DNA from: Phyllobates terribilis
Lineage: Eukaryota
Length of the DNA: 64,000 bases
Assembly: GCF_046119375.1 (NCBI RefSeq)
Contig: NW_027362761.1
Span: 970,610,001 to 970,674,000 of the forward strand
Direction: 5' to 3'
Shown here one piece after another: positions 23,064 through 60,479 of the stretch. Every line of letters starts with the position of its first letter. Within the stretch, counting starts at the first letter, position 1. The notes beneath the pieces are model-generated. The model ran no database searches, had not been told where the DNA came from, and was given only the letters and a program-made list of their open reading frames with translations. A program made the position numbers and the translations under genes.

Positions 23064-24782
<1,719 letters not shown>

Positions 24783-25279
24783 TAGTGTAAGTGTACATGT
24801 AATACACTGACTCACCAGTGATGTCTCTAGGTGAAGTCCTTCATCTTCGCTTTTCTTCTTCATCTGGCACAGACAGCCATCACTTCTTCCAGCCAGGAAT
24901 CATCTCTGCAGAAAATAACACACAGTTATTAATAACTGATCTCTTCTAGAGAATATTCCCACTTTCCCCCCCGACCTCTACACTACACCAGTTGAAGAAA
25001 AAAAGCAACATAGTGCCGTCCTGCACAGTAACAGGACCTCTCTTTTGTCCCATCCCATGGAAAACAATTTCCTAAAAAATTATATTACAGAAGTAATAAT
25101 GTAATAATAATTGGAATCTAAAGTAATAATGTTCCCCACTGGTCACCATAAACTAATAAAGTATGTTCCTCAATCTGGCTCCCAAACAGTAATTAAGTCC
25201 CTTGTCTAGCCAGGCACCCCCATATGTCCCTTCTGGCCACCATTTGTCTAGTGTGACCCCTCCATATATTTATCCTAGC

Positions 25280-26690
25280 ACATGTGTATCGAGCCTGCCC
25301 CCTCCCATATACCCATCCTAGCCCCCCCATGTGCCAGTCTGCCCCCCCACATATCCATCCTTGCCTCCATGTTTCCAGCCTGCGCCCCCATATGTCCCCC
25401 CCATATATCCTCCATGTGTCCAGCCTGCCCTCTACATATTCATCCTGGCCTCCATGTGTCCAGCCTCTCCCCTCATATATCCATACTGCCCTTACCCCCT
25501 GCATATATCCATCCTGACACCCCCCATATATCCAGCGTGCCCCTCCATATATTTATGCTAGCCCATGTGTATCGAGCCCGCCCCCCCACATATTCATCCT
25601 AGCCCCCCCCATATATCCATCCTGGCCTCCATGTGTTCAGCCTGCCCCCCCCCCCATATATCCATCCTGGCCTCCATAAGTCCAGCTTGCCCCCCCCATA
25701 TATCCATCCTGGCCTCCATATATCCATCTTGCCCCCCCATATATCCATCCTGCCCCCCCATATATCCATCCTGCCCCCCATATATCCATCCTGGCCTCCA
25801 TGTGTCCAGCCTGCCCCCATATACCCATCCTGCCCACCCCCCTTTGCCTGGGTCCACCTTGGTTCCCCCTTGTGTGTCTTGCCAGGGCTCCCCCTTGTGT
25901 GTCCAGCCAGGGCTCCCCTCCCTTGCGTGTCCAGCCAGGGCTCCCCCCTTGTGTGTCCAGCCAAGGCTCCCCCCCTTGCGTGTCCAGCCAGGGCCCCCCC
26001 CCTCGTGTGTCCAGCTTGCCCCCCCCTCGTGTGTCCAGCTTGGCCCCCCCTCATGTGTCCAGCTTGGTCCCCCCTCATGTGTCCAGCTGGGCCCCCCCTC
26101 GTGTGTCCAGCTGGGCCCCCCCTCGTGTGTCCGTCCAGCTGGGCCCCCCCTCATGTGTCCGTCCAGCTGGGCCCCCCCTCGTGTGTCCGTCCAGCTGGGC
26201 CCCCCCTCGTGTGTCCATCCAGCTGGGCCCCCCCTCGTGTGTCCGTCCAGCTGGGCCCCCCTTGTGTGTCCATCCAGCTGGGCCCCCCTTGTGTGTCCAT
26301 CCAGCTGGGCCCCCCTTGTGTGTCTGTCCAGCTGGGCCCCCCCTTGTGTGTCTGTCCAGCTGGGCCCCCCCTTGTGTGTCTGTCCAGCTGGGCCCCCCCT
26401 TGTGTGTCTGTCCAGCTGGGCCCCCCCTTGTGTGTCTGTCCAGCTGGGCCCCCCCTTGTGTGTCTGTCCAGCTGGGCCCCCCCTTGTGTGTCTGTCCAGC
26501 TGGGCCCCCCCTTGTGTGTCTGTCCAGCTGGGCCCCCCCTTGTGTGTCTGTCCAGCTGGGCCCCCCCCTTGTGTGTCTGTCCAACTTGCCCCCCCCTTGT
26601 GTGTCTGTCCAGCTGGGCCCCCCCCTTGTGGGTCTGTCCAGCTGGGCCCCCCCTTGTGTGTCCTGCTGGCCCCCGCCTTGTCTGTCCAGA
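25280..26690. repeat. C-rich minisatellite complex: ~21-bp CCCCCCATATATCCATCCTG-type units grading into 28-bp CCAGCTGGGCCCCCCCTTGTGTGTCTGT units
   Basis: Period 28 measured at 26412 and 26440; produces 28-aa repeats in the ORF track. Confidence 0.95.
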
Positions 26691-33169: not shown

Positions 33170-34805
<1,636 letters not shown>

Positions 34806-36150: not shown

Positions 36151-37670
36151 GATAAGAAGGCACATCCAGCACAGAATCCTCGTAACAAATCCTTGTTTAT
36201 TGCAAATCCATAAAAACTCCATACACAGAGTAATCGGAGACGCGTTTCAGACTACTACATCTTTAGTCATTGCATACATACTATAGACAAATATAGCACA
36301 TATACCACAGCCATTAAACAATTTCTTAAAATGGCTGTGGAGTTCTTATTGAAAGATAATTGCTTCAAGTTTAACCTAAGTTCTTTCACCAAAAATGGGG
36401 AGCCCCAATGGAGGCTAATTTTTCCCTTTGTCTAGAAAATTTGTATATGTCCAAATGGGAGGAGTTATTTTTGTTTGCGGACAGTTTGTTTTCATCCCAT
36501 ATCAGGTGGCATGGTCGCTATATTGATGACCTCCTCCTGATATGGGATGGGAACACGGAGGAGGCCAATGAATTTGTCTCATATATTATTAACAACGATT
36601 TGAAAATGAAATTCACTTCAAACATGAATATTCATATGATGAGTTTTTTAGTCATCACTTTGGAAGGACATCTCATGCGGGGTAAACAGATCTCCCCATA
36701 TACTAAAAATAATGACATTAATTCCACTTTGTTGGAGACTTCATGTCATCCTGCTCACGTATTCAGGAATGTGCTAGTGGGAGATATTATGAGTCAAAAA
36801 GAATACTTAGGGTACTACATTATGGAAGCGGCAATCTATAAATATGTGCAATAAATTGCGTCGTAGGAATTTCCCAAAATGGATGTTGGCAAGTGTAATA
36901 ATGGGCAATATGGATAGAGAAGACATGCTAGCAGACAATAAAGGCAGAAATAAGGAATTTACTACACAAGACATAGACAGATTTTCATTTTCTACTAACT
37001 ATAGCATTGAATTCATGGAAATTAAAAACATCATACAAAGGAATATCCCAATGTTGTTACAGGATAAAACGTTAAATGAGGTATTAAAAACATCTGTCAA
37101 CTATGTAAGCCCCATCGTTTACACTTATGTCAAAAGTACCCTCGTTGGGTGATATGTTCTCTCCCACATTATTCTCTGTTAATAAATCCCCTACGTCTAC
37201 TTGTCTAAGAAACGTGGGGTTCCTTAAATGTGGCTATATGAGGTGTATGTGTTGTAATTTTGTAGTTAGAACTGAAAAACGAATCTCCCTAGTCATTACT
37301 TAGGAATACAAAATTAAATCGTACATAAACTGCAACACTGCGATCGTAGTTTGTTTGATCACATGTACGGCATGCAACATACAGTTTGTAGGGTGCACGA
37401 TAGGAGCATTGAAAATACGCGCAAGAAGGCATATTTCCGACACTAACAACAAATTAGTTTTGCAGCCTCCAAACACTTAATTGACCACCATAATGCCGAT
37501 ACTAGTACATTTAAAATTGTAGCTTTTGAAAAAGTCCATAGACCTGCTCGTGGAGTTGATCATAAAAGGAAACTTATCAAAAGGGAGTCATGGTGGATAT
37601 ATGTGTTAAAAACACGGGTAACGCAGGGTATGAATATGCACCAGGATATTATACACCATTATGAATAATA
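36150..37670 (+). mobile_element. Penelope-like element fragment (RT and GIY-YIG relic) with an inverted pseudo-LTR at the 5' side
   Basis: MEANFSLCLENLYM..WHGRYIDDLLLIWDG (RT); YINCNTAIVVCLITCTACNIQFVGCT near 37320-37400 (GIY-YIG region). Confidence 0.85.
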
Positions 37671-38760: not shown

Positions 38761-40919
38761 CAAACTCCAATTAGTGGTTTACCTTTACTGTCAGCCCCAT
38801 GTATATTTACCCATATTGACTCTATATTGTCGAAGCTCCCCCCAATGTCATCTTTGAGTACAGGTTTTAAATTGAATTTAAAGGGATTCTGTCAGCAGGT
38901 TTTTGCCTTGTTATCTGAGGGTGGCATGAGGTAGGGGTTAAAACACACACTTCAACAATGTGTCCCTTATCAAGCTGTGTGCTGTTTTTCTTACAGTGAA
39001 GGTTTTGTCACTAGGATTATTATTGTTAGGTCTGATGTGCAGGGGAGTGCTAGTCCAACTCTGCCCTTCCTGTGATAAGCAGCTCACTGTCAATAGACAA
39101 TGTAAATACAGAGCCTGATGTTGGCAGGGTTAGGTTTCTCAGCTCTGCTGCATGCTAAACCTAATTTTGACAACTTCTTATAGTTGATTTATTGAATGAG
39201 ATGAACAGTCAGTGTTTGTACTCATATGACTTAGTTAATGATAGTGTGCCCTCAGCCTTGATGGAAGATATCCAGCCACTATTATGTGATGAAGAAAGCC
39301 ATCTCAGCTTCTCCTTCATTTTTTGTGAAATTAAGTTTTTGGTCATTAATTGGGGTTAATTCCCTCAATTGTAACCTGTGCAAGATTGTGCCAATGAGGA
39401 GGGCTGGACACACAGAACACAAAAGTTTAACAAATAAAAATGTATGGGCTTCTATGACTGCACAGGTATGTTCACACAGGACAAAGATTTTAATCAAACA
39501 AAAATTTATGGGCATGATTGCATTTTCTTCTCACTTATTTTTTTTTTTTAGTGAAAGTAAGCTTTTCTTGTACATCAACTGGGGTGAATTCCCCAATTTG
39601 GAACCTGCGCAGTATTGGGATTTTGTCTTATATTACTGCAAGCAATTTTCTTTAACCAAATCCTCATATTTTTGTAAAAAATAGAATTTTTGTGTTTTGT
39701 GAAGTTTCCTGGTAGAACCCTGCACAGGATTTGGCACGTGCCCAGAACTGTGAGCATAAAAGTCAGTTGCAGTGTTATTTTTCATTTCTAACTCCTATGG
39801 TTGGAGAAACTGGTCAAACTAGAAATTGAACCCTGACCCTTTATTTCCCGTGGACTGGATACCAAGTCAGACACATAAAGTAGCATACAAAGTTGATGGG
39901 ACACACAGTATTATCAAGTCCAGCACTCTGTGTGCATCTTCTATAAAATGCACAGCCAACCAAATTTGGCATGAACCACAGGTCTAGCCAGGTAAATTCT
40001 TAGTAGTCCCCTGCGCAGAAAATTGTAGTCAGTCTCTTAGACTTACTGGCAGTGACAAAACAGAAAGATCTGCCTGATCACAAAAAAACGAATACATTTT
40101 TAATTTTTGTACTGGTTTTTAACCCCTTTCCTAGATATGACGTGTTGGTTCGTCATATGTTGGGTCTCGTTCTTTGTTGTGGGCTCAGGAACTGATGATC
40201 ATGACTGTGTTATTCAGCCATCATATGCCTCTAACAGCCACAAGTGGAGCAGAGCTAAGTCTGCAGCTGTTAACTTGTTAAATGCTGTTGTCAATCTGTG
40301 ACAGCAGGATTTACAGCGCAAGACCAGTGGGGGCGTGCTGTTCTAACTACACATTGGTTCTGATAGATTGCACATGGGCGCGGATAGGGGTCTCCTAAGG
40401 ATGTTGCGTCTATCAGGACTAGTGTTGAGCCACCCCCGTAGTGTTCGAGTTCGGTTCGGTTCGTCAAACACCCTTGTGTTCGCCGAACTGTTCGTCGAAC
40501 TGTTCGTCGAACACCTTCGAACACCGTTAAAACCAATGGCAGGCAAACAAAAACACATAGAAACACATAGAAAACACTTTCAAAGGTGTCCAAAAGCTGA
40601 CAAACTGCTCAGAAGACATAACTAACACATGGAAAAGTGACAAGTACATATAGTCATGCGAAAAGAAAAGAGGTGGAGAAGTAAAAGGAGGGGGAGACAC
40701 AGATATAGGCATGTCATGCCCTTCTAAAATCCAAAAAGTGAGAAGCCGACACGGCCAGTCCGTTCCTGCCCGTGCCACCTCCGTGTCGCCGGGTTTGTGC
40801 CAGAGCCGCGGTGGACCCTGACGGCCAGCCCCCATCTCCCAATACTGGTGCCTGTCCGCTGGTGGGTCGAGCGAGCCCCCTGTGGTGGAAGCAGGTCTAA
40901 GCTTTTTAATTTAAATTGT

Positions 40920-41195
40920 CTCTCTAATTTGAATGAATACACTTTAAATCCTTTTACAAGGATCTATTGGAGGGCAAGTCTCATGCCAGCAGCCGCGTAA
41001 TTCCAGCTCCAGTAGCGTCCACTAAAGCTGCTGCAGTTAAAAAGCTTTTATAAGGATCGAGCTCGGCGGTCCACCGCAAGGCGTCCTACCGCCAGTCCCA
41101 GCCCCTATGCCTTGGGGTGCCTCCTGATGCTCTTCACTGAGTGTCCCGGGGTCCCGAAGCATTTCCTTTGAAAAAATTAAGTGTCTAAACTACAG
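40920..41195 (+). rRNA. 18S rRNA fragment (~275 bp, degenerate, non-functional) inside hAT-B copy 1
   Basis: ATTGGAGGGCAAGTC..TGCCAGCAGCCGCG.TAATTCCAGCTCCA..GCTGCAGTTAAAAAGCT..CTGAGTGTCCCGGGG.CCCGAAGC..TTTGAAAAAATTA are recognisable conserved 18S motifs with substitutions. Confidence 0.93.
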
Positions 41196-41303
41196 GTGGT
41201 GTAGCTTGCTTAACAGCTGGGATAATCTGCTGACTAGCAGACACTGCTACTAGGCACAAAGTATTTCCTGGGCTAGATGCAGTTAAAACTTTGTAATTAG
41301 ATA

Positions 41304-43122
41304 CTCTCGTTGGATGCTGAGAAAGCATTCCATAGAGTCTCCGGCACGCCATATATTATTCTCTTAAAAAGCTTGGGGTAGGGGTCTAGGGGACCCTTTT
41401 ATAGCCAAAATCACGGCCCGGTATCGCAATACGTCACCTAGGCTGAAGATAAATGGAACTGTAGCACCCCGAGGGCTTGGTTGCTACAGAGGTATTGCAC
41501 CTCACCCAGAGGTGTGATATCTCACTCTCAGGTAAGGATGGAGTGTGGATCAGGACCGCGACACCTGCATGCATTACACCACATTGCCGTGGGGCAGGGC
41601 GACCAATATGTCTATGAGATGGGCACGACAGTCCCTGTCCCTGGCTGGAGTGGGGGGAGGGAACACTGAGGAAGGGGAACCCTGTAGTGCAGGAGCAGGG
41701 AGGAAGCAGTTCCTGGGTGCATTGAGAAGGAAGTATAAAAGGTGGGCACCATCTTAGTTCAGTGCAGAGAAGTCTGAGCAGAAGTGACAGGGAGCAGGGG
41801 CTCTGCATGAGCTCTTCTCCGGAGGCGGGCCTAGTAACAGAGGCCCAGGCCTGGAAGAGGGAGAAGGAAGGAAGAGGAGCGCAGAAGGCTCCAGGAACGA
41901 GGAACGAAGGGATCCCAGGGGTGCGACAGGCGAGTCGCCACCGCACGCCCGAATCCACCTGCGTGGAGGGGTCAGTCCAAACGGGGAGACCGGTCCCCGA
42001 AACTAGTGGAGGCAGGAAACGACCCTCAGCTAGAAACCGGAGGCTGTGACATTTTATGTGGCGCAGCCCCTCGCTACACCCGCTAGGAAGGCACCACATA
42101 GGGTCAGGGAAACTGGCGCCAAGTTTACCAAGAGGAGGCCCGAGGCAGCCGGACAGAATGTTGGTAAGAAAGACCAGACAAAGGACACACAAAGGGGGTC
42201 CTGTGAAGCGCTCCAAAGTTATCTGGGAGTTGTCTGAGCCCCTCAACTGGTAAGCACTGTACGAAGTGGGCAGACGTTACCTGCAGAAGTGGTCTGGATA
42301 ATAAGAACTGTGAGTAAAGGCCCTGGACTGCATCACTGACTCCGTGTCATTACTGCTGCTGCCCTACACCATCACCCCCATCCTCCGCATACACTGCCCT
42401 GAGACTATACTCCTCCCGTGGGGAGTTATGCTACGCTCTGCTGCACCCACAACACCAGCCTCAGCGGTCTGCCCTGCAGCGGCGGTTCACTCTGACCGCA
42501 ATCCACGGGTGGCATAGTCGGACATTTAAACATCAAAACCACATAAATAGTTCCGCCACTGGTTTGACCGCCCTGAGCCACGGAACCGGGTCGCCGCCAC
42601 GGAGACTACAACCACCAGCATCCACCAAAAAGGGTCCGGCTCCTGGTGTCCCAATGCCCAGGGGGCGCGTCAGAACATTTTCATCACCTTTCATAATCAC
42701 CAATGGGACAAGGCAGGGATATCCTCTGTCCCCTCTCTTATACATCCTAGTGATGGAGCACCTGCTCTCATCAATTCGCCATAACCCCAATATTAAGTGG
42801 ATTGAGGTGGGAGGCACTGAGTACAAGTGCTCTCTATTTGCTGATGATGTCCTAGTATATATCACTCAATCACATATATCCATCCCTGCTGTTATGGCTG
42901 AAATAGATCACTTTGTTACATGGTCAAATTTTAAAATCAATGCAGCGAAGTCTGAGGCCCTCGATGTCTCCCTCCCAAAATCCATACAGGATTACATCCA
43001 GTCCAACTTTCCCTTTGCCTGGCCCTCACAGAGTATCAAATGCTTAGGAATTCCTATTCATAGAGACCTCTCCCGTCTATGTTATCTTAATTTTGGGCCC
43101 TTTATTGAACAACTCCATACAG
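41304..43122 (+). pseudogene. L1-like ORF2 RT fragment, split by a solo LTR
   Basis: LSLDAEKAF...KINGT|FSSPFIITNGTRQGYPLSPLLY..SLFADDVL..NFKINAAKSE. Confidence 0.9.
41460..42672. mobile_element. Solo LTR, 1213 bp
   Basis: TG..CA termini, 4-bp TSD GAAC (41456-41459, 42673-42676); removing it restores the L1 frame ATA AAT GGA ACA TTT TCA. Confidence 0.9.
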
Positions 43123-43194
43123 ACCACGGTTGGCAAGTTAGAACTGTAAGATTCACTACGTGAACCACTGGTGTTTTGTGGAAAAGCACATGTA

Positions 43195-44556
43195 CACTGT
43201 GTTCCAAATTATTATGTAAAAAGTGTTTAGGAGTGATAAGCGAAGAATTTGTTTGTTTGTCAGTTAAACTCATTGATGGTGATGTGTGTCAGGGCTCTTT
43301 ATATCACTGTAAGCAATTGCAGACACCTGTGCTAATTAGTTTGGCAGGTGTGTCCAATGAAAGGCAAGACTACTTAAGAAGGCTGTCCCACATTATTAAG
43401 CAGCCTACATTTTCTGCCAAAATGGGAAAGAAAAAGGATGTGTCGGCTGCAGAGAAGCAACAAATTGTGGAGTGTTTAGGTCAAGGCATGACTACAATCA
43501 ATATTGTGCGATGATCAGGATGAAGTGTCTTGGCAATCAAGAAGTATGTAGCTGATTCACAGTACACACGTGTGCGTGCTGATAAGGGCAAATTGAGGAC
43601 TCTTTCCTACAGGCAATTACGTCAGGTTAAAATAGCAGGGGCAAAAAAGCCTTGTCATAGCAGCAGACAAGTTTTTGAAGCTGCTGGTGCCTCCAACGTA
43701 CCCCGAACAACAAGATGCATTGTCCTTCAGAGGTTTGCAACTGTGCATACGCCATCCTGTCGACCTCCTCTATCCACTTCACACAAGCAGAAATGGCTCC
43801 AGTGGGCCAAACATTACATGAAGACTGATTTCAAAACTGTTTTGTTCACGGATGAGTGCCGTGCAACGCTCGATGGTCCAGATGGATGGAGTGGAGGATG
43901 GCTGGTTGATGGACACCCCATGCAAACACGGCTACAGCGCCAACAAGGAGGAGGTGGAGTAATGTTTTGGGCTGGAATCATGGGGAGAGAGATTGTAGGC
44001 CCCTTTAGGATCCCTGAAGGGGTAAAGATGAACTCCATAATGTATGTGGAGTTTCTCAAACAGCACTTCCTGCCATGGTTCAAGAAGAAGAACCGTGTAT
44101 TCCACAGCAAGATCATTTTTATGCATGATAATGCACCGTCTCATGCTGCACATAACACATCTGCATCTCTGGCTGATATGGGCATAAAAGGGGACAAACT
44201 TATGCTGTGACCCCCATGCTCCCCTGACCTCTACCCCATTCAGAACCTCTGGAGCATCATCAAAAGGAGTGTCTATGATGGCGGGAGGCAGTTCACATCT
44301 AAGCAACAGCTCTGGGAGGGTATTCTGTCCTCATACAAAACAATTGAAGCAGAAACCATCCAAAACCTGACAAATTCAATGGACGAGAGAGTTCAGAAGC
44401 TCCTTTCGAACAAGGGGTCCTATGTGCAAATGTAACATCACCTAGAATAAAGTTTTGAGTTGAAAACTGTTTGATTTCAGTTTCTAATAACCTGCTAATG
44501 CTTATAATTTCAAAAATGACCATTTTTTTGGTCTTTATTAAAATGAAAAGGTTGAT
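43195..44556 (+). mobile_element. Tc1-like DD37E (TRT-type) element, right end missing
   Basis: TA then CACTGTGTTCCAAATTATTATG; MGKKKD..VLFTDECRATLDGPDGW..FMHDNAPSH..(W)PPCSPDLYPI(Q); 37 residues between the second D and the E position. Confidence 0.85.
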
Positions 44557-44684
44557 CGAAGAGTGTGGGGGATCTAAGAGTGTGGCAACCTAGTAGTCAG
44601 GATTACTTCGAATTCTGACAATCTGAGGGTCATGTTGCAGGTAGTGCAGCAAAAAGGCACTTATGTGTCTTGCGCATCTCGGAG

Positions 44685-44960
44685 CCCCAAAATTATTTAC
44701 CGGGCTAGATGCAGCTAAAAATTATTATTAATTTTAAATCTGGTGGAGCTTATTATAGATGGCCTAATAGAATCAGTACTGCACACTGCTACAAAGCCCA
44801 AATTATTTTCCAGCCAAGATACAGATAAACATGATTAGTAATTTTAAATCTGGTGGAGCTTAGTATAGATTTCCTATTAGAATCAGTGCTGCACACTGCT
44901 ACAAAGCCCAAATTATTTTCCAGCCAAGATACAGATAAACATGATTAGTAATTTGAAAGC
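44685..44960 (-). repeat. 110-bp monomer variant, about 2.5 copies, 3' of the transposase in copy 1
   Basis: AAAGCCCAAATTATT near 44792 and 44902; similar to the 48790-49985 unit. Confidence 0.8.
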
Positions 44961-45002
44961 TTAAAACGGTTGGTGAGGTGATTTTAACCAATCATCAAGC
45001 TT

Positions 45003-48000
45003 TTACTCTCCCCAGGATGACACAGGGGTAGAAAAGTCGTTTCGGATCCATGATTTGTTCATCTTTATGAACGTGAGTCTGTCTACATTATCAGTGGAGA
45101 GCCGCGTGCTCTTATCTGTCAGCACACTACCAGCAGCGCTGAACACACGTTCAGACAGAACGCTGGCTGCGGAGCATCACAAGATCTCCAAGGCGTAAGT
45201 GGCTAGCTCCAGCCATTTATCCAGATTGGAAGCCCAAAAAGAGCAAGGGTCCAGTGACACAGTCATGACTTCAATGTTTACTTGGAGATACTCCTGTACC
45301 ATCGTCTCTAGGCGTTGACTATGTGTCAGACTTCTTGTCTCCTGTGGCCTTGCAAAGGATGAGCTAAAAAAGTGGTGAAATGATTCCGCAAAATTGATGT
45401 TACCAGCAGATACTGTGTTTCTGTTACGGTTTGAGTGCTGAACACTCGACGGTCCCACGGTTGGCAATTTGGAACTGTGAGATTCACTACGTGCACCACT
45501 GGTGTTTTGTGGAAAAGCACATGTAAGATTCTGCAACAGTCTCTGCTGATACTCCTGCATGCATGCATCCCTTTCTATGGCAGGAATAATTTCTGCAAAT
45601 TTACTTTTGTATCGGGGATCTAACAGTGTGGCAACCCAGTAGTCAGGATTATTTCTAATTCTCACAATTCGAGGGTCATGTTGCAGGTAGTGCAGCAAGA
45701 AGGCACTCATGTGTCTTGCGCATCCAGGAGCACCAAGTCCCTGTTGTGTTGGTGGCGAGGTAACAATCATGCTTCCTTCCTCTGTCCTCTCCCCCCAACC
45801 TCGCACAACAGAAATGTGATCAAGGTCTCCCTCACCTGATGAGTCTTCCATCAGTTCGTCCTCCACTTCTTCCTGGGCTCCTGCACCTTCCTCACTAGTT
45901 TTGCTGCTACCATTCGCCCTGGTAAAACCATCTCCCCCACCCTCACATGCCTGCCGCCTTGGTGCTGCCGACCATCTGGACCTTGCAGATGTTAGCCCTT
46001 CCGCATACAACTCCTCCTCCTCTACTTCCTCCACCTCCTCTTGTGCCACCACTTGACTCCGAATTCTGTTTAACATGTGCTCCAGCATGTAAATCACCGG
46101 AATAGTCATGCTGATAATGCCATCGTCAGCACTAAACATCTTCGTCGCCATTTCAAAACTGTGCAGAAGGGTGCATAGGTCCCTGATCTGAGACCACTCC
46201 TCCAGCGTGATTTGCCCCACCTCTGGATCTCGTTGGCCCAGGCTATACGTCAGAACGTATTGCACCAGGGCTTGTCGGTGCTGCCACAGTCGCTGCAACA
46301 TGTGCAGAGTTGAATTCCACCGGGTAGGCACATCGCATTTTAGCCGGTGAAGTGGCAGGCCCAACGACTTCTGTAGAGATGTAAGTCGCTGAGCTGCGGG
46401 ATGCGAACGGCGGAAGTGAGCACACAGCGACCGTGCCCTCTGCAGAAGGCCATCTAGTCCGGGATAGTGGGGTAAAAATTGCTGGACAACCAGGTTCAAC
46501 ACGTGAGCCATACAAGGCACGTGTGTGACATTGCCCCGGCGAAGGGCCGCACCCAGGTTTGCAGCATTGTCGCACACGGCCTTCCCTAGTTTCAGGTCCA
46601 GTGGAGACAACCATTCATGAAATTGGTTCTCCAGAGCTGACCACAACTCCTCAGCTGTGTGACTCACATTTCCCAAACATTTCAAAGTAAAAACCACCTG
46701 ATGACGTTGAGCCCTACTGCGAGCATAGTAAGGAGGTGTGCAGGATCCCTTCTGCGCAGTTAGAAAGCTTGTGGCATGACCAGACAGGCTTTGGGTGCAG
46801 GTGGAGGACCGAGAGGAGGTTGAGGAGGCAGAAGCAGTGGAGGAACTTTGAGATAAAGAGGATTGACGCACAATTCGTGGGGATGGCAAGACTTGGACAG
46901 CAGCCCCTTGTCCTGCTGTCACCATAGTTACCCAGTGCCCAGTCAGCGACATGTAACGCCCCTGTCCATGCCTTCTCATCCAAGTGTCTGTGGTGAAATG
47001 CACCCTGTCACACACAGAGTTTCTCAAAGAAGCGGTGATGTTGTGTGCGACATGCTGGTGGAGCGCAGGCACACCTTTCTTTGAGAAGTAGTGCCAACTG
47101 GGCATCTGGTACTGGGGCACTGCGACGGACATAAGGTCTCGAAAATCCTCTGTGTCCACCAGGCGGAAAGGCAGCATTTCTGTAGCCAAGAGCTTGCAGA
47201 TGGTGAAATTCAACCTCTTAGCTTTCTCATGGCTAGGAGGAAATTTTCTTTTACTTGTCCACATCTGAGGGACCGAGGGCTGGCTATTGTGCTTAGACGG
47301 GGTTGATAAGGGTGTCCCCGGCAAACTGCCGGTCTGTGAGGAAGATGCAGGCGGACATGTTAGGTTGCCTTGATCCAAAGGTGGTGCTATCGATGTCAGA
47401 CAGCGCTCAACACCAACTGGTGTTACCACCTCCAAAGAAAATGATGACCTGTCAATCACGCTGGCTGTTGCGGGTAAAGAGGTGGCAGGTCTGCGTCCCA
47501 AAACAGGTGTGACTGCTGTCCCCCCAGTCACAGAGGATGAAGAGGCAGCGGATGCACAAGATATGGCAGACAGTGGTTGGCCCGGCAGGCTAGGCCGCAT
47601 TGTAGCACACTGAGCTTCCCACTGCAACTTATGCTTCATGTCCATGTGCCGGTTCATGCATGAAGTACTCAAACTATGTATTTTTTGGCCTCTACTTAGC
47701 TTTTGCTGACAAATGTTACAGATAACACGAGTTGGGTCATCTTTATCGATCAGAAAAAATGCCCAGGCTATGCAAGGCTTAGCACCCATGCGACCTGAAG
47801 AGCCACCACGACTTGTGGTGAGAGGCAGAGTTGTGTTTGAGGATGCAGTTGTTGACTTGCTTCCAGTACTACGTCTCTGTCCAGGAAGGCGCAACCTGAC
47901 CTTGTCGTCACTAGCATTCTCCTCCACCTCCTCTGCTGACCTCATCCCTTGGCTGACTGTGGGTTGACAGTAAGTGGGATCTCCAACCTCATCATCATCA

Positions 48001-48704
48001 CCCTGTGCGTTATCACACCCGTCGTCCTCAGAGCCAACCTGTTCCTGCCCTGACAAAAAACTAAAGTTGTCGCTCCTATCAGGTATTTGAGTCTCATCAT
48101 CGTCTTCCTCATTGTCTCCACCAACATGAGTTACAATTTGGGAATGAGGGTCTACATTATGGTCAGAACCTTCAGCGTCTGGTCCTGGATCCGACTCATA
48201 AAGATTCTGGGCATCAGTGCAAAACATTTCCTCGTCTGGATTCACAGAAGCGCTGGAGCCGACCTCTGATTCCCAGGCTATAGTATGAGTAAACAGCTCT
48301 GCAGACTCAACCCTCTGTTCTACCTCATACTCAGACGGGCAGCTGGAGATATGGCAGCAGTGAGGAAGCAAGTGCGATTGGGGTGACACCTTTGAGGACT
48401 GGAGTATTTGTGATGTTGAAGTTGATGAGGAGGAGAGCCCACTTAAAGGAGCACTTGATATCCGTTGAAGCACCTGCTGTTTTTGTGCGTCATCTGGAAT
48501 TTGTAGCGATTGGCGTGGCCGTAAGAAAGGGATCTTATCACATTGTCCGCTAAAAGAAGTAGACATTTTAGTTTGGCTGGAAGATGGTCTTTCTTCTGCA
48601 GATGTTACTGTTGCTTTAACACCTACCCCATGGACACAACCTTTTTTCCCCTTCCCAACACGCCTATTCCCCTTTCCACCAGCAGCAGGCCTTTTTCCAC
48701 TCAT
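45003..48704 (-). pseudogene. hAT transposase, 1233 codons, with one in-frame TGA at 45177-45179
   Basis: BED finger (AWAFF..ICNICQ..MNRHMDMKH), FTTDTW, VCDNAANL, PCMAHVLNL, DVPTRWNST; past the TGA the frame continues CSAASVLSERVFSAAG..FIKMNKSW..SWGE to TAA at 45003. Confidence 0.96.
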
Positions 48705-48789
48705 TTTGGTGGTTAACTAATTCACAACTCTGGAGTTGTTTGCACAAAAAACAATGGATGGGAACCGAGCAGAGCTGAGTGGCCAAACT

Positions 48790-49985
48790 GTAGTATTAGG
48801 CCAAAACTATTGGCTGGGTTAGATGCAGAAAAAAATTATATTCAATTTGCAACCTGATGGAGGTCAGTATAGATGGACTAATAGACCAAGTCCCACACAC
48901 TGCTAGAAGCCCAAATATTTTTTCAGAGCTAGATGCAGAAAAAAATTATATTGAATTTGCAACCTGGTGGAGGTCAGTATAGTTGGACTAATAGACCAAG
49001 TCCCACATACTGCTAGAAGCCCAAATATTTTTTCAGAGCTAGATGCAGAAAAAAAATATTTTTAATTTGCAACCTGATGGAGGTCAGTATAGATGGACTA
49101 ATAGACCAAGTCCCACACACTGCTAGAAGCCCAAATATTTTTTAAGAGCTAGAAGCAGAAAAAAATTATATTCAATTTGCAACCTGATGGAGGTCAGTAT
49201 AGATGGACTAATAGAACAAGTCGCCTACACTGCTAGAAGCCCAAATATTTTTTCAGAGCTAGATGCAGAAAAAAAATATTTTTAATTTGCAACCTGATGG
49301 AGGTCAGTATAGATGGACTAATAGAACAAGTCCCACACACTGCTAGAAGCCCAAATATTTTTTCAGAGCTAGATGCAGAAAAAAATTATATTCAATTTGC
49401 AACCTGATGGAGGTCAGTATAGATGGACTAATAGAACAAGTTCCACACACTGCTAGAAGCCCAAATATTTTTTCAGAGCTAGATGCAGAAAAAAATTATA
49501 TTCAATTTGCAACCTGATGGAGGTCAGTATATATGGACTAATAGACCAAGTCCCACACACTGCTAGAAGCCCAAATATTTTTTCAGAGCTAGATGCAGAA
49601 AAAAATTATATTCAATTTGCAACCTGATGGAGGTCAGTATAGATGGACTAATAGAACAAGTCGCACACACTGCTAGAAGCCCAAATATTTTTTCAGAGCT
49701 AGATGCAGAAAAAAATTATTTTTAATTTGCAACCTGATGGAGGTCAGTATAGATGGACTAATAGAACAAGTCCCACACACTGCTAGAAGCCCAAATATTT
49801 TTTCAGAGCTAGATACAGAAAAAAATTATATTCAATTTGCAACCTTATGGAGGTCAGTATAGATGGACTGATAGAACAAGTCCCACACACTGCTAGAAGC
49901 CCAAATATTTTTTCAGAGCTAGATACAGAAAAAAATTATATTCAATTTGCAACCTTATGGAGGTCAGTATAGATGGACTAATAGA
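48790..49985 (-). repeat. 110-bp tandem array (variant 1), 11 copies, immediately 5' of the transposase ATG
   Basis: GCAACCT at 48849, 48959, 49069 ... 49949, period 110. Confidence 0.97.
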
Positions 49986-51479
49986 ATGATGCTATGCCCA
50001 AAAGGTTTTACTTCACTAGGTGCAGTAAAAAAATTGGTATTCTATACACAGGTGGTGTAGCTTGCAACACAGATATACTACTCCACTGACTAGCACACTC
50101 TGCAATAGGCCAAAAAGGATTAGCTTTGCTAGATTTAGCCAAATGCTGTGAAAAAAACTTGCACAGCACTGGCACAGACCTGCCTGGCAAAAACTGATAG
50201 GAACTGATGTAACTTAGTCCTGAAAAGGACTGCAATTACAATTAGTCTTTACTCCCAACCTATCTATTTAAGAGCACAGACCTGCCTGATAAAAGTCGTA
50301 GGAAAAGCTGTAACCTAGTCCTTAAAAGGACTGCAATCACAACTCTTCCCTACTCCCAAGCTATCTGTAGATTTGTGCGAAAATTGGCTTTAAATTAACA
50401 AGGTATAGCGCACACAGCAACAGCGGTGCCGTCTAACACGCAGCTGCAGCAGTGAGAAAATGGTGGCGACGGAGAAAATGGCTGGGTCTTATAGGGCAAG
50501 GACATGTGACATACACTGCCAATGACACATGCCCTTGCTTGTGTGAAAAAAAGCAGTTCGCTCCGTCTGTGCTCTGCTGATAGGCTGACAGATTGCACCT
50601 CCCCACTGTAAATGCGGGAAAGAGAAAAAAAAATGGAGATCTTCATTATTCCTGCAGAGATCCATCCCCTGCCCCTCCCCCGCCCCGCTGTACACTCAAA
50701 CTGCGTATTAACATTAATTTTCAGCACTACTGAGAAAAAATCCAGTTATGATTTTGGTGCACGAACAGTTATCGAACATAACCTCGAACAGCCGAATTTT
50801 TTTCAAATTGTTCGTGTTCGCCGAACGGCTCGAACACCGCCCAAAACAGCTTGAATTTGAGATTGGCGAACAGTTCGAGTCGAACAACGCTCATCTCTAA
50901 TCAGGACAGTACTCCTATCAAAGTCAGCCTGTGGCTATCTCAGATAGGAGATTATGATTTGTGCTATATAGTGTTGGAATTGCTGTATATAGTACAAGTG
51001 ATCAGACAATCAGAGGTTTAAGTCCCCTAAGGAGAACAAAACACAGCAAAAATAAAAAAAAGTTTTAAAATATGTGGAAAAAAAATTGAGTCACCTCTGA
51101 TTTCCCCCATTAAAAATAAAGACATAGAAAGTATGCCCTTGCACATTGATTGATAGCTGGCTCTGCTGCACATCTGTGAAGAGTGAGCTGTCAATCAAAG
51201 TACCAATGCATGCTAACAATAACTGCTCACAGTATAGTGAGCGCTACTATGAGTAATGACTATAGCATCTCCATGCATGCCCCAGGACTAAAAGCTGCTG
51301 GGGAAATATGTTAAATTTCTCAAAGTAGCTGTTCTTTCAATAGGGCAGCCAAGCAAGCAGTATTGTAATGTTATTTACTTGCAGGTTAAACCTATATGTG
51401 CAGATAACTAGCATTTTCATGTAACAGGTTTCTTATAATGAGATTATATTGCAATTAATTCATTAATTGACTGCAGACT

Positions 51480-51569
51480 GACGAATAATGACTTGTCGTG
51501 TGTTTAGAATCATTATCCATTTGTAGTAGCCATCCTCTTTTCAGCTTCAGCTTTTTTACAGCTGGGGTT
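51480..51569 (-). pseudogene. Tc1 transposase relic forming the left flank of hAT-B copy 2; continues at 62646-63116
   Basis: Joining the flanks gives ILDKNITPAVKKLKLKRGWLLQMDNDSKHT. Confidence 0.85.
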
Positions 51570-52229
51570 TAGAGATGAGCAGTGTTCGACTCGAACTGTT
51601 CGCCCATCTCAAATTCGAGCTGTTTTGGGCGGTGTTCGAGCCGTTCGACGAACCCGAACGGTTTGCAAAAAATTTCGCTGTTCGAGGTTATGTTCGATAA
51701 CTGTTCGTGCACCAAAACCGTAACTGCATTTTTTCACAGTAATGCTGTTAATCAATGTTAATAGACAGTTTCAGTGTAGAGTGGGCGGGGGGAGGGGCAG
51801 GGGATGGATCTCTGCAGAAATAATGCCGATCTCCATTTTTTTTTTCTTTCCCGCATTTACAGTGGGGAGGTGCAATCTGTCAGCCTATCAGCAGAGCACA
51901 CACGGAGCGAACTGCTTTTTTTCACACAAGCAAGGGCATGTGTCATTGGCAGTGTATGTCACATGTCCTTGCCCTATAAGACCCAGCCATTCTCCCCGTC
52001 GCCACCATTTTCTCACTGCTACAGCTGAGTGTTAGATGGCACCACTGCTTCTGTGGGCGATATACAATATAACTTAGTGAATTGCGAGCGAATTTGCAGT
52101 TAAATAGAGAGATAGGTTTAGGGAGTAGGGACTAGTTGTAATTGCCGCCCTTTTGAGGGTTAGGTTACAGCAGCTCCTAGCACTTTTTGCCAGGCAGGTC
52201 TGTGCCAGTGCTGTGCAAGTGTTTCTCAA

Positions 52230-55200
52230 TGCAGCTAAGCCAATCCTTTTGGGCCTGTAGCAGTGTCTGTTAGTCATTGGAGTAGCCCATCTGAACCAAG
52301 CTACACCACCTGTGTATCTAATAACAATTTTTTTACAGCATGTAGCCCAGTAAATCCTTTTTGGCCTGTAGCAGTGTCTGGTAGTCAGTGGAGTAGCCGA
52401 TCTGAACCAAGCTACACCACCTGTGTATCTTATAATAATTTTTTACTGCATCTACCCAAGTAAATCCTTTTGGGCCTGTAGCAGTGTCAGGTAGTCATTG
52501 GAGTAGCCCATCTGAACCAAGCTACACCACCTGTGTATCTAATAAATTTTTTTTACTGCATCTAGCCCAGTAAATCCTTTTGGGCCTGTAGCAGTGTCTG
52601 GTAGTCAGTGGAGTAGCCCATCTGAACCAAGCTACCCCACCTGTGTAGCTAATAACAATTTTTTACTGCAACTAAACCAGTAAATCCTTTTGGGCCTGTA
52701 GCAGTGTCTGGTAGTCAGTGGAGTAGCCCATCTGAACCAAGCTACACCACCTGTGTATCTAATAACAATTTTTTACTGCATCTAGCCCAGCAAATCCTTT
52801 TGGGCATAGTAGCAGTGTCTGGTAGTCAGTGGAGTAGCCCATCCGAACCAAGCTACACCACCTGTGTATCTAGTAAAAATTATTTACTGCATCTAACCCA
52901 GTAAATCCTTTTGGGCCTGTAGCAGTGTGAGGTAGTCATTGGAGTAGCCCATCTGAACCAAGCTACACCACCTGTGTATCTAATAAATTTTTTTTACTGC
53001 ATATAGCTAAGTAAATCCTTTTGGGCCTGTAGCAGTGTCTGGTAGTCAGTGGAGTAGCCCATCTGAACCAAGCTACACCACCTGTGTATCTAATAACAAT
53101 TTTTTACTGCATCAAGCCCAGTAAATCCTTTTGGGCCTGTAGCAGTGTCTGGTAGTCAGTGGAGTAGCCCATCTGAATGAAGCTACACCACCTGTTTATC
53201 TAATAACAATTTTTTACTGCATCTAACCAAGTAAATCCTTTTGGGCATGGTAGCAGTGTCTGTTAGTCAGTGGAGTAGCCCATCTGAACCAATCTACACC
53301 ACCTGTGTATCTAATAACAAATTTTAACTGCATTTAGCCCTGTAAATCCTTTTGGGCCTGTAGCAGTGTCTGTTAGGCAGTGGAGTAGCCCATCTGAACC
53401 AAGCTACACCACTTGTGTATCTAATAACAATTTTTTACTGCATCTAACAAAGTAAATCCTTTTGGGCCTGTAGCAGTGTCTGTTAGTCAGTGGAGTAGCC
53501 CATCTGAACAAAGCTACACCACCTGCGTATCTAATAACAATTTTTTTACTGCATCTAACCCAGTAAATCCTTTTGGGCCTGTAGAGTGTCTGGTAGTCAG
53601 TGGAGTAGCCCATCTGAACCAAGCTACTCCACCTGTGTATCTAATAACTATTTTTTACTACATCTAGCCCAGTAAATACTTTTGGGCATAGTAGCAGTGT
53701 CTGGTAGTCAGTGGAGTAGCCCATCTGAAGCAAGCTACACCACCTGTGTATCTAATAAATTTTTTTTACAGCATCTAGCCCAGGAAATCCTTTCGGGCAT
53801 AGTAGCAATGTCTGGTAGTCAGTGCAGTAGCCCATCTCAACCAAGCTACACCACCTGTGTATCTAATAACAATTTTTTACTGCATCTAGCCCAGTAAATC
53901 CTTTTGGGCCTGTAGTAGTGTCTGTTAGTCAGTGGTGTAGCCCATCTGAACCAAGCTACACCACCTGTGTATCTAATAACAATTTTTTACTGCATCTAGC
54001 CCAGTAAATCCTTTTGTGCCTGTAGAAGTGTCTGGTAGTCAGTGGAGTAGCCCATCTGAACCAAGCTACACCACCTGAGTATCTAATAACAATTTTTTAC
54101 TGCATCTAGCCCAGTAAATCCTTTTGGGCATAGTAACAGTGTCTGGTAGTCAGTGGTGTAGCCCATCTGAACCAAACTACACCACCTGTGTATCTAATAA
54201 CAATTTTTTACTGCATCTAGCCCAGTAAATCCTTTTGCGCCTGTAGCAGTGTCTGGTAGTCAGTGGAGTAGCCCATCTGAACCAAGCTACACCACCTGTG
54301 TATCTAATAACAATTTTTTACTGCATCTAACCCAGTAAATCCTTTTTGGCCTGTAGCAGTGTCTGGTAGTCAGTGGAGTAGCCCATCTGAACCAAGCTAC
54401 ACCACCTGTGTATCTAATAACAATTTTTTACTGCATCTAGCCCTGTAAATCCTTTTGGGCCTGTAGCAGTGTCTGGTAGTCAGTGGAGTAGCCCATCTGA
54501 ACCAAGCTACACCACCTGTGTATCTAATAACAATTTTTTACTGCATCTAGCCCTGTAAATCCTTTTGGGCCTGTAGCAGTGTCTGGTAGTCAGTGGAGTA
54601 GCCCATCTGAACCAAGCTATACCACCTGTGTATCTAATAACAATTTTTTACTGCATCTAGCCCAGTAAATCCTTTTGCGCCTGTAGCAGTGTCTGGTAGT
54701 CAGTGGAGTAGCCCATCTGAACCAAGCTACACCACCTGTGTATCTAATAACAATTTTTTACTGCATCTAGCCCTGTAAATCCTTTTGGGCCTGTAGCAAT
54801 GTCTGGTAGTCAGTGGAGTAGCCCATCTGAACCAAGCTACACCACCTGTGTATCTAATAACAATTTTTTACTGCATCTAGCCCTGTAAATCCTTTTGGGC
54901 CTGTAGCAGTGTCTGGTAGTCAGTGGAGTAGCCCATCTGAACCAAGCTACACCACCTGTGTTTCTAATAACAATTTTTTACTGCATCTAACCCAGTAAAT
55001 CCTTTTTGGCCTGTAGCAGTGTCTGGTAGTCAGTGGAGTAGCCTATCTGAACCAAGCTACACCACCTGTGTATCTAATAACAATTTTTTACTGCATCTAA
55101 CCCAGTAAATCCTTTTGGGCCTGTAGCAGTGTCTGGTAGTCAGTGGAGTAGCCCATCTGAACCAAGCTATACCACCTGTGTACCTAATAACATTTTTTTA

Positions 55201-58200
55201 CTGCATCTAGCCCAGTAAATCCTTTTGGGCAGAGTAGCAGTGTCTGGTAGTCAGTGGAGTAGCCCATCCGAACCAAGATACACCACCTGTGTATCTAATA
55301 ACAATTTTTTACTGCATCTAGCCCTGTAAATCCTTTTGGGCCTGTAGCAGTGTCTGGTAGTCAGTGGAGTAGCCCATCTGAACCAAGCTACACCACCTGT
55401 GTATCTAATAACAATTTTTTACTGCATCTAGCCCTGTAAATCCTTTTGGGCCTGTAGCAGTGTCTGGTAGTCAGTGGAGTAGCCCATCTGAACCAAGCTA
55501 CACCACCTGTGTTTCTAATAACAATTTTTTACTGCATCTAGGCCAGTAAATCCTTTTTGGCCTGTAGCAGTGTCTGGTAGTCAGTGGAGTAGCCTAACTG
55601 AACCAAGCTACACCACCTGTGTATCTAATAACATTTTTTTACTGCATCTAACCCAGTAAATCCTTTTGGGCCTGTAGCAGTGTCTGGAAGTCAGTGGAGT
55701 AGCCCATCTGAACCAAGCTATACCACCTGTGTATCTAATAACAATTTTTTACTGCGTCTACTCCAGTAAATCCTTTTGGGCATAGTAGCAGTGTCTGGTA
55801 GTCAGTGGAGTAGCCCATCCGAACAAAGCTACACCACCTGTGTATCTAATAACAATTATTTACTGCATCTAACCCAGTAAATCCTTTTGGGCCTGTAGCA
55901 GTGTCTGGCAGTCAGTGGAGTAGCCCATCTGAACCAAGATACACCACCTGTGTATCTAATAACAATTTTTTACTGCATCTAGCTAAGTAAATCCTTTTGG
56001 GCCTGTAGCAGTGTCTGGTAGTCAGTGGAGTAGCCCATCTGAACCAAGCTACACCACCTGTGTATCTAATAACAATTTTTTACTGCATCAAGCCCAGTAA
56101 ATCCTTTTGGGCCTGTAGCAGTGTCTGGTAGTCAGTGGAGTAGCCCATCTGAGTGAAGCTACACCACCTGTTTATCTAATAACAATTTTTTACTGCATCT
56201 AACCAAGTAAATCCTTTTGGGCATGGTAGCAGTGTCTGTTAGTCAGTGGAGTAGCCCATCTGAACCAATCTACACCACCTGTGTATCTAATAACAAATTT
56301 TAACTGCATTTAGCCCTGTAAATCCTTTTGGGCCTGTAGCAGTGTCTGTTAGGCAGTGGAGTAGCCCATCTGAACCAAGCTACACCACTTGTGTATCTAA
56401 TAACAATTTTTTACTGCATCTAACAAAGTAAATCCTTTTGGGCCTGTAGCAGTGTCTGTTAGTCAGTGGAGTAGCCCATCTGAACAAAGCTACACCACCT
56501 GCGTATCTAATAACAATTTTTTTACTGCATCTAACCCAGTAAATCCTTTTGGGCCTGTAGAGTGTCTGGTAGTCAGTGGAGTAGCCCATCTGAACCAAGC
56601 TACTCCACCTGTGTATCTAATAACTATTTTTTACTACATCTAGCCCAGTAAATACTTTTGGGCATAGTAGCAGTGTCTGGTAGTCAGTGGAGTAGCCCAT
56701 CTGAAGCAAGCTACACCACCTGTGTATCTAATAAATTTTTTTTACAGCATCTAGCCCAGGAAATCCTTTCGGGCATAGTAGCAATGTTTGGTAGTCAGTG
56801 CAGTAGCCCATCTCAACCAAGCTACACCACCTGTGTATCTAATAACAATTTTTTACTGCATCTAGCCCAGTAAATCCTTTTGGGCCTGTAGTAGTGTCTG
56901 TTAGTCAGTGGTGTAGCCCATCTGAACCAAGCTACACCACCTGTGTATCTAATAACAATTTTTTACTGCATCTAGCCCAGTAAATCCTTTTGTGCCTGTA
57001 GAAGTGTCTGGTAGTCAGTGGAGTAGCCCATCTGAACCAAGCTACACCACCTGAGTATCTAATAACAATTTTTTACTGCATCTAGCCCAGTAAATCCTTT
57101 TGGGCATAGTAACAGTGTCTGGTAGTCAGTGGTGTAGCCCATCTGAACCAAACTACACCACCTGTGTATCTAATAACAATTTTTTACTGCATCTAGCCCA
57201 GTAAATCCTTTTGCGCCTGTAGCAGTGTCTGGTAGTCAGTGGAGTAGCCCATCTGAACCAAGCTACACCACCTGTGTATCTAATAACAATTTTTTACTGC
57301 ATCTAACCCAGTAAATCCTTTTTGGCCTGTAGCAGTGTCTGGTAGTCAGTGGAGTAGCCCATCTGAACCAAGCTACACCACCTGTGTATCTAATAACAAT
57401 TTTTTACTGCATCTAGCCCTGTAAATCCTTTTGGGCCTGTAGCAGTGTCTGGTAGTCAGTGGAGTAGCCCATCTGAACCAAGCTACACCACCTGTGTTTC
57501 TAATAACAATTTTTTACTGCATCTAACCCAGTAAATCCTTTTTGGCCTGTAGCAGTGTCTGGTAGTCAGTGGAGTAGCCTATCTGAACCAAGCTACACCA
57601 CCTGAGTATCTAATAACAATTTTTTACTGCATCTAACCCAGTAAATCCTTTTGGGCCTGTAGCAGTGTCTGGTAGTCAGTGGAGTAGCCCATCTGAACCA
57701 AGCTATACCACCTGTGTATCTAATAACAATTTTTTACTGCATCTAGCCCAGTAAATCCTTTTGCGCCTGTAGCAGTGTCTGGTAGTCAGTGGAGTAGCCC
57801 ATCTGAACCAAGCTACACCACCTGTGTATCTAATAACAATTTTTTACTGCATCTAGCCCTGTAAATCCTTTTGGGCCTGTAGCAATGTCTGGTAGTCAGT
57901 GGAGTAGCCCATCTGAACCAAGCTACACCACCTGTGTATCTAATAACAATTTTTTACTGCATCTAGCCCTGTAAATCCTTTTGGGCCTGTAGCAGTGTCT
58001 GGTAGTCAGTGGAGTAGCCCATCTGAACCAAGCTACACCACCTGTGTTTCTAATAACAATTTTTTACTGCATCTAACCCAGTAAATCCTTTTTGGCCTGT
58101 AGCAGTGTCTGGTAGTCAGTGGAGTAGCCTATCTGAACCAAGCTACACCACCTGTGTATCTAATAACAATTTTTTACTGCATCTAACCCAGTAAATCCTT

Positions 58201-59340
58201 TTGGGCCTGTAGCAGTGTCTGGTAGTCAGTGGAGTAGCCCATCTGAACCAAGCTATACCACCTGTGTACCTAATAACATTTTTTTACTGCATCTAGCCCA
58301 GTAAATCCTTTTGGGCAGAGTAGCAGTGTCTGGTAGTCAGTGGAGTAGCCCATCCGAACCAAGATACACCACCTGTGTATCTAATAACAATTTTTTACTG
58401 CATCTAGCCCTGTAAATCCTTTTGGGCCTGTAGCAGTGTCTGGTAGTCAGTGGAGTAGCCCATCTGAACCAAGCTACACCACCTGTGTATCTAATAACAA
58501 TTTTTTACTGCATCTAGCCCTGTAAATCCTTTTGGGCCTGTAGCAGTGTCTGGTAGTCAGTGGAGTAGCCCATCTGAACCAAGCTACACCACCTGTGTTT
58601 CTAATAACAATTTTTTACTGCATCTAGGCCAGTAAATCCTTTTTGGCCTGTAGCAGTGTCTGGTAGTCAGTGGAGTAGCCTAACTGAACCAAGCTACACC
58701 ACCTGTGCATCTAATAACATTTTTTTACTGCATCTAACCCAGTAAATCCTTTTGGGCCTGTAGCAGTGTCTGGTAGTCAGTGGAGTAGCCCATCTGAACC
58801 AAGCTATACCACCTGTGTATCTAATAACAATTTTTTACTGCGTCTACTCCAGTAAATCCTTTTGGGCATAGTAGCAGTGTCTGGTAGTCAGTGCAGTAGC
58901 CCATCCGAACCAAGCTACACCACCTGTGTATCTAATAACAATTATTTACTGCATCTAACCCAGTAAATCCTTTTGGGCCTGTAGCAGTGTCTGGCAGTCA
59001 GTGGAGTAGCCCATCTGAACCAAGATACACCACCTGTGTATCTAATAACAATTTTTTACTGCATCTAGCTAAGTAAATCCTTTTGGGCCTGTAGCAGTGT
59101 CTGGTAGTCAGTGGAGTAGCCCATCTGAACCAAGCTACACCACCTGTGTATCTAATAACAATTTTTTACTGCATCTAGCCCAGTAAATCCTGTTTGGCCT
59201 GTAGCAGTGTCTGGTAGTCAGTGGAGTAGCCTATCTGAACCAAGCTACACCACCTGTGTATCTAATAACAATTTTTTACTGCATCTAGCCCAGTAAATCC
59301 TTTTGGGCATAGTAGCAGTGTCTGGTAGTCAGCGGAGTAG
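52230..59340 (+). repeat. 110-bp satellite array (variant 2), about 64 copies
   Basis: Unit GTAGCAGTGTCTGGTAGTCAGTGGAGTAGCCCATCTGAACCAAGCTACACCACCTGTGTATCTAATAACAATTTTTTACTGCATCTAGCCCAGTAAATCCTTTTGGGCCT. Confidence 0.98.
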
Positions 59341-59355
59341 CCCACCTGTGAAGCC

Positions 59356-60169: not shown

Positions 60170-60479
60170 TAGCTTGAGGATTTTGGAAAATCACCTCATC
60201 AACAATTTTAAGCAACTCTGGGGCAATTGATGCCACTTAAGTGGTGTCTGTGGCACAATTTTTGGAAAAAATGGAGACTCTTTTTGGAGTCCCCTTGCTG
60301 TGTTTTACATGACGTTGGCATCGTCAATTCCAGGTGGGTCGGGTCGCCCCCCCCCCTTTTAACCGTAAGAAACTACATACACTATGGCTTGGGGTAACAC
60401 AGATGGTTGAGTCTGAAGAGCTGTTTACTCATACTATAGCCTGGAAATCAGAGGTCTGCTCCAAAGCTTCAGTGTATGC

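Follow-up and report, generated by a model that had tools for sequence, protein, structure and literature searches.

A 2024 review of ribosomal DNA (rDNA) and transposable elements (TEs) describes 5S promoters in short interspersed elements (SINEs), in Cassandra, and in Ajax; 28S sequence in SINE28; and repeats of the intergenic spacer (IGS) in the piggyBac element Pokey (PMC10946416). The rDNA-derived TE modules in the table of that review include neither an 18S case nor a hAT case. In three papers on poison-frog genomes, hAT elements are said to be abundant, and 18S sequence inside them goes unmentioned (PMC11152451, PMC6278860, PMC12208295). Here we describe two hAT elements that carry the same internal piece of the host 18S rRNA gene. 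They lie in a 64,000-nucleotide (nt) stretch of Phyllobates terribilis contig NW_027362761.1; this whole stretch is called the window, it contains no N, and all coordinates below are positions in it. In the literature on rDNA-TE modules and on poison-frog genomes we found no description of an 18S-hAT chimera; it is real and abundant, and apparently undescribed.

RESULTS

An 18S piece with the same junctions in two hAT elements

Element structure was determined by comparing the window with itself and reading the element ends; tandem arrays were called with Tandem Repeats Finder. Copy 1 occupies 40420-50899 (10,480 bp); it has a minus-strand transposase, terminal inverted repeats (TIRs), and a perfect target site duplication (TSD). 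Copy 2 occupies 51570-62645 (11,076 bp), with a transposase remnant on the plus strand; its ends match those of copy 1, and it too has a TSD and TIRs. The two copies are arranged head to head with 670 bp between them (50900-51569), which could reflect local hopping or just the density of the family.

Sequences were called as 18S with Rfam model RF01960 (eukaryotic small-subunit [SSU] rRNA; gathering score, 50), and local re-scans refined the borders. The match in copy 1 covers 40878-41229 on the plus strand (68.8 bits, E = 3e-16; 75.4 bits on local re-scan), and that in copy 2 covers 61258-61367 on the minus strand (68.1 bits, E = 5e-16; 70.4 bits on local re-scan). With refined borders, the 18S fragments are 40906-41195 (plus strand) in copy 1 and 61079-61351 (minus strand) in copy 2. 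Each corresponds to model positions ~490-775, so that the homology runs from the region of helix 18 and the 530 loop into variable region 4 (V4), a length of 275 to 290 bp, or ~15% of the 18S gene. In both copies the piece lies in noncoding sequence, past the stop codon of the transposase but short of the 3' subterminal region, and is antisense to the transposase (plus against minus in copy 1, minus against plus in copy 2). No insertion interrupts it in either copy. A preliminary description of this DNA had claimed an antisense 18S piece of ~275 bp in each copy; Rfam confirms it, with borders within ~15 nt of where that description had put them.

On one side the 18S piece adjoins a GC-rich segment (40745-40905 in copy 1, where it is 68% GC; 61352-61513 in copy 2). 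On the other side it is joined to 110-bp monomers: a single one in copy 1 (41196-41304), which shares 79 to 88% identity with the monomers in the arrays of copy 2, and 5.5 of them in copy 2 (60470-61078). Both junctions align between the copies without a gap, and the monomer is in identical phase. At the monomer junction, the 18S homology stops at ..AAAC(T/C)ACAGG and the monomer goes on with TGGTGTAGCTTGC. The SSU consensus here is AAAGCAGG and the monomers have ..ACAGGTGG.., which leaves an overlap of 4 nt, CAGG. The earlier claim that the copies share their junctions, to the monomer through a CAGG-like overlap and to the GC-rich segment at the far side, is therefore upheld.

A functional 18S gene or an rDNA orphon was not found at either place: of the full-length SSU (~1.8 kb), model positions ~490-775 alone are present, the 530-loop motif is mutated, and the flanks are a satellite monomer and the GC-rich segment. 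The GC-rich segment itself matched no Rfam model at E values up to 1 and, in all frames, no Pfam model. That it is another piece of rDNA is unsupported, and on this point the Rfam scan cannot speak because the external and internal transcribed spacers and the IGS are absent from Rfam.

Superfamily and order of events

The TSD of copy 1 is ATCAGGAC, present as identical 8-mers at 40412-40419 (3'-end side) and 50900-50907 (5'-end side). That of copy 2 is CTGGGGTT at 51562-51569 and CTGGTGTT at 62646-62653, in which 7 of the 8 bases agree. The element termini have the form TAG(A/T)G(A/T)TGAGC, with TAGAGATGAGC at the 5' ends and TAGTGTTGAGC at the 3' ends (9 of 11 bases in common). Subterminal GTTCG/CGAAC motifs number 8 to 11 per 150 bp at all four ends (10 to 11 at both ends of copy 1), against a window mean of 0.17. 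The transposase scan found zf-BED (PF02892; E = 6e-10) in the 1,175-amino-acid (aa) open reading frame (ORF) of copy 1 and Dimer_Tnp_hAT (PF05699; E = 1.3e-14) in the remnant of copy 2; it reported no Pfam model for the RNase-H-like DDE core. Because of the 8-bp TSDs, the termini, the zf-BED domain, and the hAT dimerization domain, both elements are DNA transposons of the hAT superfamily, the assignment that had been proposed.

The TSDs differ between the copies, each element having its own 8-bp pair, as the preliminary description had also noted. Because the TSDs differ, the cargo junctions are identical, and the copies have diverged by 6 to 10%, the 18S piece was captured before either insertion and travelled as cargo of the element; this order of events, too, had been claimed and stands.

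The identity of copy 1 to the reverse complement of copy 2 is 94.3% in the 3' subterminal region, which includes the TIR (40420-40744, minus strand, versus 62328-62645, plus strand), 94.2% in the GC-rich segment, 90.7% in the 18S piece, and 92.5% in the monomer (41196-41304 versus 60969-61078). It is 91.5% in the C-terminal region of the transposase and 89.9% at the 5' end. When transitions in CpG context are left out, the 18S piece has diverged by 6.7% and five other segments by 4.4 to 8.5%. Because its divergence equals that of the other segments, the 18S piece shows neither special conservation nor recent conversion.

At universal SSU positions, the two copies have in common the changes UAUAUU to UCCACU, GUUGUUG to GCUGCUG, and GCUCGUAG to GCUUUUAU, and GUAGCGUCCACUAAAGCUGCUGCAG is a further example. 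Such shared changes indicate one capture before the two lineages split. Each copy also has private changes. The universal GGUGCCAGCAGCCGCGGUAAU motif of the 530 loop is mutated differently in the two; in copy 1 one of its bases is deleted and GG has become CA. Such a mixture of shared and private changes is what one capture and neutral decay afterwards should produce. Independent capture by the two copies is rejected on the identical junctions and the shared changes at universal positions, and an assembly artifact is likewise rejected.

The chimera in public runs

To see the family beyond the window, we used the contigs of four public runs that were placed on 40300-41700. Run X4 is DNA from another individual, a separate sample in a separate study with the same organism label. 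In X4, 53,424 contigs were placed; the depth was 23.8 on the unique flank, and the summed depth on the element was 1.3 to 4 million. The 18S bins (1.65 to 2.57 million) were as deep as the neighboring bins, and contigs that bypass the 18S piece had a depth of just 23 to 352. No well-supported loose ends at the 18S borders were present among the contigs on 40300-41700. The copy number is on the order of tens of thousands, an order of magnitude only, since summed contig depth is not copy number.

The 18S/monomer junction is spanned by X4 contigs (records 31 and 32), and the GC-rich/18S junction is spanned in two other organisms, B (record 4) and E (record 21, 436 nt). The preliminary description would have been undone by junctions confined to the two copies with gene conversion between them; these bridging contigs, from another individual and two organisms, show that they are not so confined. 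About three quarters of the placed contigs are at least 95% like copy 1, which places copy 1 in a young subfamily and copy 2 in an older one.

In the RNA-like runs, very deep contigs lie on 41005-41192, break at 41065, and have loose ends ..GGATCTTGGGATCGAGCT; these are the hosts' real 18S rRNAs. The real rRNA contigs were placed only on the V4 part, probably because contigs matching human sequence had been filtered out, and two fixed differences are given. These contigs indicate that the V4 part of the element derives from a frog-type 18S, of which a few bases are missing at 41065. The runs guessed to be RNA also cover the element; their contigs are strandless, and DNA carryover from a high-copy repeat is possible. 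In one of them, X14, 190 bp of the 3' subterminal region (40441-40628) are 5 to 20 times deeper than the rest, which is not so in X4. Short derivatives present in transcripts could account for this excess, as could an artifact of contig depth.

Transposase genes and the zones behind them

The transposase gene of copy 1 (45003-48704, minus strand) consists of the 1,175-aa ORF (45177-48704), one in-frame TGA, and 57 more codons, that is, 1,233 codons with a single stop. In the alignment of the two copies, copy 2 has TCA in place of the TGA. The TGA falls inside the hAT dimerization region, and the conserved SERVFS part of that region is among the 57 codons beyond it (45003-45179). The copy 1 transposase frame is one substitution short of full length, and the element is predicted to be nearly autonomous. 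Copy 2 retains a C-terminal remnant (59303-60169, plus strand), the part with the Dimer_Tnp_hAT match; a 7.1-kb array of 110-bp monomers (52242-59348) takes the place of most of the gene, and copy 2 is nonautonomous.

A word-based protein search with the 1,175-aa query returned three gene models, from Ranitomeya imitator and P. terribilis, that hold an exonized piece of transposase (108 to 138 aa, 75 to 80% identity). No full-length relative was returned by this search, whose length window limits the result, so that it is not evidence of absence.

A 3.3-kb patchwork block (41305-44567) that only copy 1 possesses separates its monomer from its transposase gene. It contains a reverse transcriptase (RT) fragment like those of long interspersed elements (LINEs) (RVT_1, E = 1.4e-15, 42318-43160), a Tc1 fragment (a weak DDE_3 match, 44211-44432), one stretch of no assigned identity, and a 71-bp duplicate of the element's own transposase (43124-43194, equal to 45455-45525). 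The junction of monomer and block is spanned by a contig in run X14 (record 16). A second own-transposase duplicate, of 123 bp (44568-44690), lies between the block and the monomers at 44690-44958; it is 90.2% identical to 45614-45736 and in the same orientation. Copy 2 has an 88-bp piece of the N-terminal coding region of the transposase at 60390-60477. Thus, in both copies own-transposase scraps sit among foreign scraps behind the gene. Read from the sequence, the own-gene scraps in both copies suggest repeated template switching between family members.

Copy 2 has in turn an 814-bp stretch (61514-62327, minus strand) that is missing from copy 1. It holds a frameshifted RT fragment that lies, like the 18S piece, on the minus strand; the Pfam RVT_1 match of this fragment is weak, and all of its nearest named protein-atlas clusters are RVT_1 (score, 0.95). 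Because contigs of other organisms run on from the GC-rich segment into this stretch (records 3, 22, and 28), copy 1 is the deletion form. The deletion form is also present in organism E (record 21).

The two hAT copies contain four arrays of 110-bp monomers (44690-44958, 48820-49986, 52242-59348, and 60470-61078). Monomers are 65 to 85% identical between arrays and 90 to 95% identical within them; the largest array has 64.5 copies and a higher-order period of 441 bp.

Other features of the window

Two adjoining ORFs (174 and 195 aa) of a Tc1/mariner-type transposase lie at 33511-34586, and a 68% similar copy lies 10 kb upstream at 23528-24577. Two adjoining ORFs at 36408-37152 (148 and 102 aa) resemble a retroelement polymerase by eye. 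The left half of the window also has tandem arrays at 3144-3812, 8527-9425, 22022-23056, and 25217-26689, with periods of 26, 131/396, 56, and 28/42 bp, respectively.

DISCUSSION

The observations are best explained if a family of Ac-like hAT DNA transposons of the frog picked up an internal 275- to 290-bp piece of host 18S once, by error-prone repair. The route would be template switching or microhomology joining during repair of the gap left by excision, or end joining with filler DNA. The same zone took up the RT scraps, the Tc1 scrap, the 110-bp monomers, and the duplicates of the element's own gene. The chimera then transposed as a unit, rose to very high copy number, and split into subfamilies, with copy 1 as a nearly autonomous member of a young composite subfamily and copy 2 as an older derivative that a satellite array has enlarged. 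The 18S piece itself would be passive baggage, too short and too mutated to serve as rRNA and decaying at the rate of the element. In Ac/Ds, hobo, and P elements, error-prone gap repair in which the template switches leaves foreign and own-gene scraps joined to one another, and because such scraps are joined here in one zone, error-prone repair is the likeliest route.

We assign this explanation as a whole a probability of roughly 0.85; its repair mechanism and the passivity of the cargo are the parts that go beyond what was observed. Several points weigh against it. The capture mechanism has behind it one microhomology and an analogy, and neither a donor locus nor an intermediate was seen. 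The GC-rich neighbor of the 18S piece has no traced origin, the abundance that the explanation includes is good to an order of magnitude, and the passivity of the piece is argued from its sequence, so that a function is possible.

A different route of entry would be retroposition: a fragment of 18S rRNA, perhaps chimeric with retroelement RNA, would have been reverse-transcribed and integrated into the hAT element. The zone around the 18S piece has many LINE fragments, and the RT fragment of copy 2 shares its strand with the 18S piece, ~300 bp away across the GC-rich segment. However, the piece has no poly(A) tail and no TSD around it, it is an internal fragment of the rRNA, and its junction with the monomer shows microhomology. 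In addition, the retroelement piece is 5' of the 18S piece, the opposite of the order in classical LINE template-switch chimeras. We consider this route unlikely. That the shared cargo is no family trait at all, and results from local inverted duplication of, or gene conversion between, two neighboring copies, is suggested by their position head to head and 670 bp apart. The different TSDs, the divergence of 6 to 10%, the very unlike internal structures, and the tens of thousands of contigs with the same sequence elsewhere, including the junctions in other individuals and organisms, lead us to reject this idea, which is scarcely credible.

Capture by repair followed by descent can also be set against the proposal that the antisense 18S piece is a working module, be it a 3' untranslated region of the transposase with a polyadenylation signal, a source of rRNA-complementary or small RNAs, or a landing pad for a site-specific LINE. 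The family is very successful, and within it the piece keeps one position and one orientation; in copy 2 the sole AATAAA downstream of the transposase stop lies in the antisense 18S, at 61218. (Read in transposase orientation, this AATAAA arose where the element differs from real 18S.) However, a fixed position is expected from descent alone, and copy 1 has TATAAA at the corresponding place (41049-41054), while its ATTAAA sits in a private 18-bp insertion. The divergence of the 18S piece, equal to that of the neighboring segments, and the different mutations of the universal 530-loop motif in the two copies also argue against a module, which we therefore regard as very unlikely. We know of no promoter in an internal 18S fragment. 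Because the piece is 15% of the 18S gene, has a broken universal motif, and diverges like its flanks, nothing in the sequence supports a function for it. Still more speculative, and to be given little credence, is a larger role in which antisense 18S at the 3' ends of transposase transcripts, from tens of thousands of copies, would feed rRNA-complementary or small RNAs to the germ line, or in which the piece would be the habitual landing site of an 18S-specific LINE. If either were true, what began as a chance capture would by now be a functioning component in a community of nested transposons.

Whatever its route, the chimera has practical consequences. In this frog, the 18S-like copies borne by the family are probably one to two orders of magnitude more numerous than the real 18S genes. 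Values for rDNA copy number estimated from read depth, background in 18S fluorescence in situ hybridization (FISH), rRNA depletion probes, and RepeatMasker counts of "rRNA" are likely to be affected. The warning about rDNA FISH and copy-number estimates that came with the preliminary description seems reasonable given this abundance. Analyses of dendrobatids should mask 18S positions ~490-775 or make use of substitutions specific to the element. The patchwork zone, for its part, preserves clear natural traces of imprecise repair in a genome of giant size.

As to mechanism, the nearest parallels are the gap repair and filler DNA of Ac/Ds, hobo, and P elements, which show internal rearrangements, deletions at short repeats, duplicates of their own sequence, and foreign filler joined at microhomologies; in the frog hAT element, the mechanism is deduced from the product alone. 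As to the product, the frog family resembles Pack-MULEs and other Pack-type elements, in which a TIR-bounded transposon mobilizes a fragment of a host gene and the chimera amplifies as a family (Jiang et al. 2004, cited in PMC10946416). Like these, it has mobilized its captured sequence in copies bounded by TIRs and TSDs, at two loci in the window and in many contigs elsewhere. Pack elements are nonautonomous Mutator-like elements of plants that carry protein-coding exons, with an interior made up of host gene fragments. In contrast, the frog carrier is an animal hAT element with a nearly intact transposase of 1,233 codons, and its cargo, from an rRNA gene, is a small part of a 10-kb element.

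The likeness to Pokey, as given in Table 2 of PMC10946416, is that of a DNA transposon with an rDNA-derived module beside tandem repeats. The target of Pokey is the 28S gene and the source of its module is the spacer, whereas the frog hAT element has a module from the 18S coding region and shows no sign of targeting rDNA. The 5S-derived SINEs (SINE3), the terminal-repeat retrotransposons in miniature Cassandra and Ajax, and SINE28 (PMC10946416) likewise disperse rRNA gene sequence and can mimic rDNA in FISH and copy counts. However, all of these are retroelements, and those with 5S sequence captured a functional RNA polymerase III promoter, whereas nothing points to a benefit from the 18S fragment in the frog hAT element. 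The present family adds an 18S piece in a hAT transposon to the few rDNA-derived modules listed for mobile elements. With no sign of a new mechanism, the chimera belongs to known kinds, being both a DNA transposon with a captured fragment of its host and a case of an rDNA-derived TE module.

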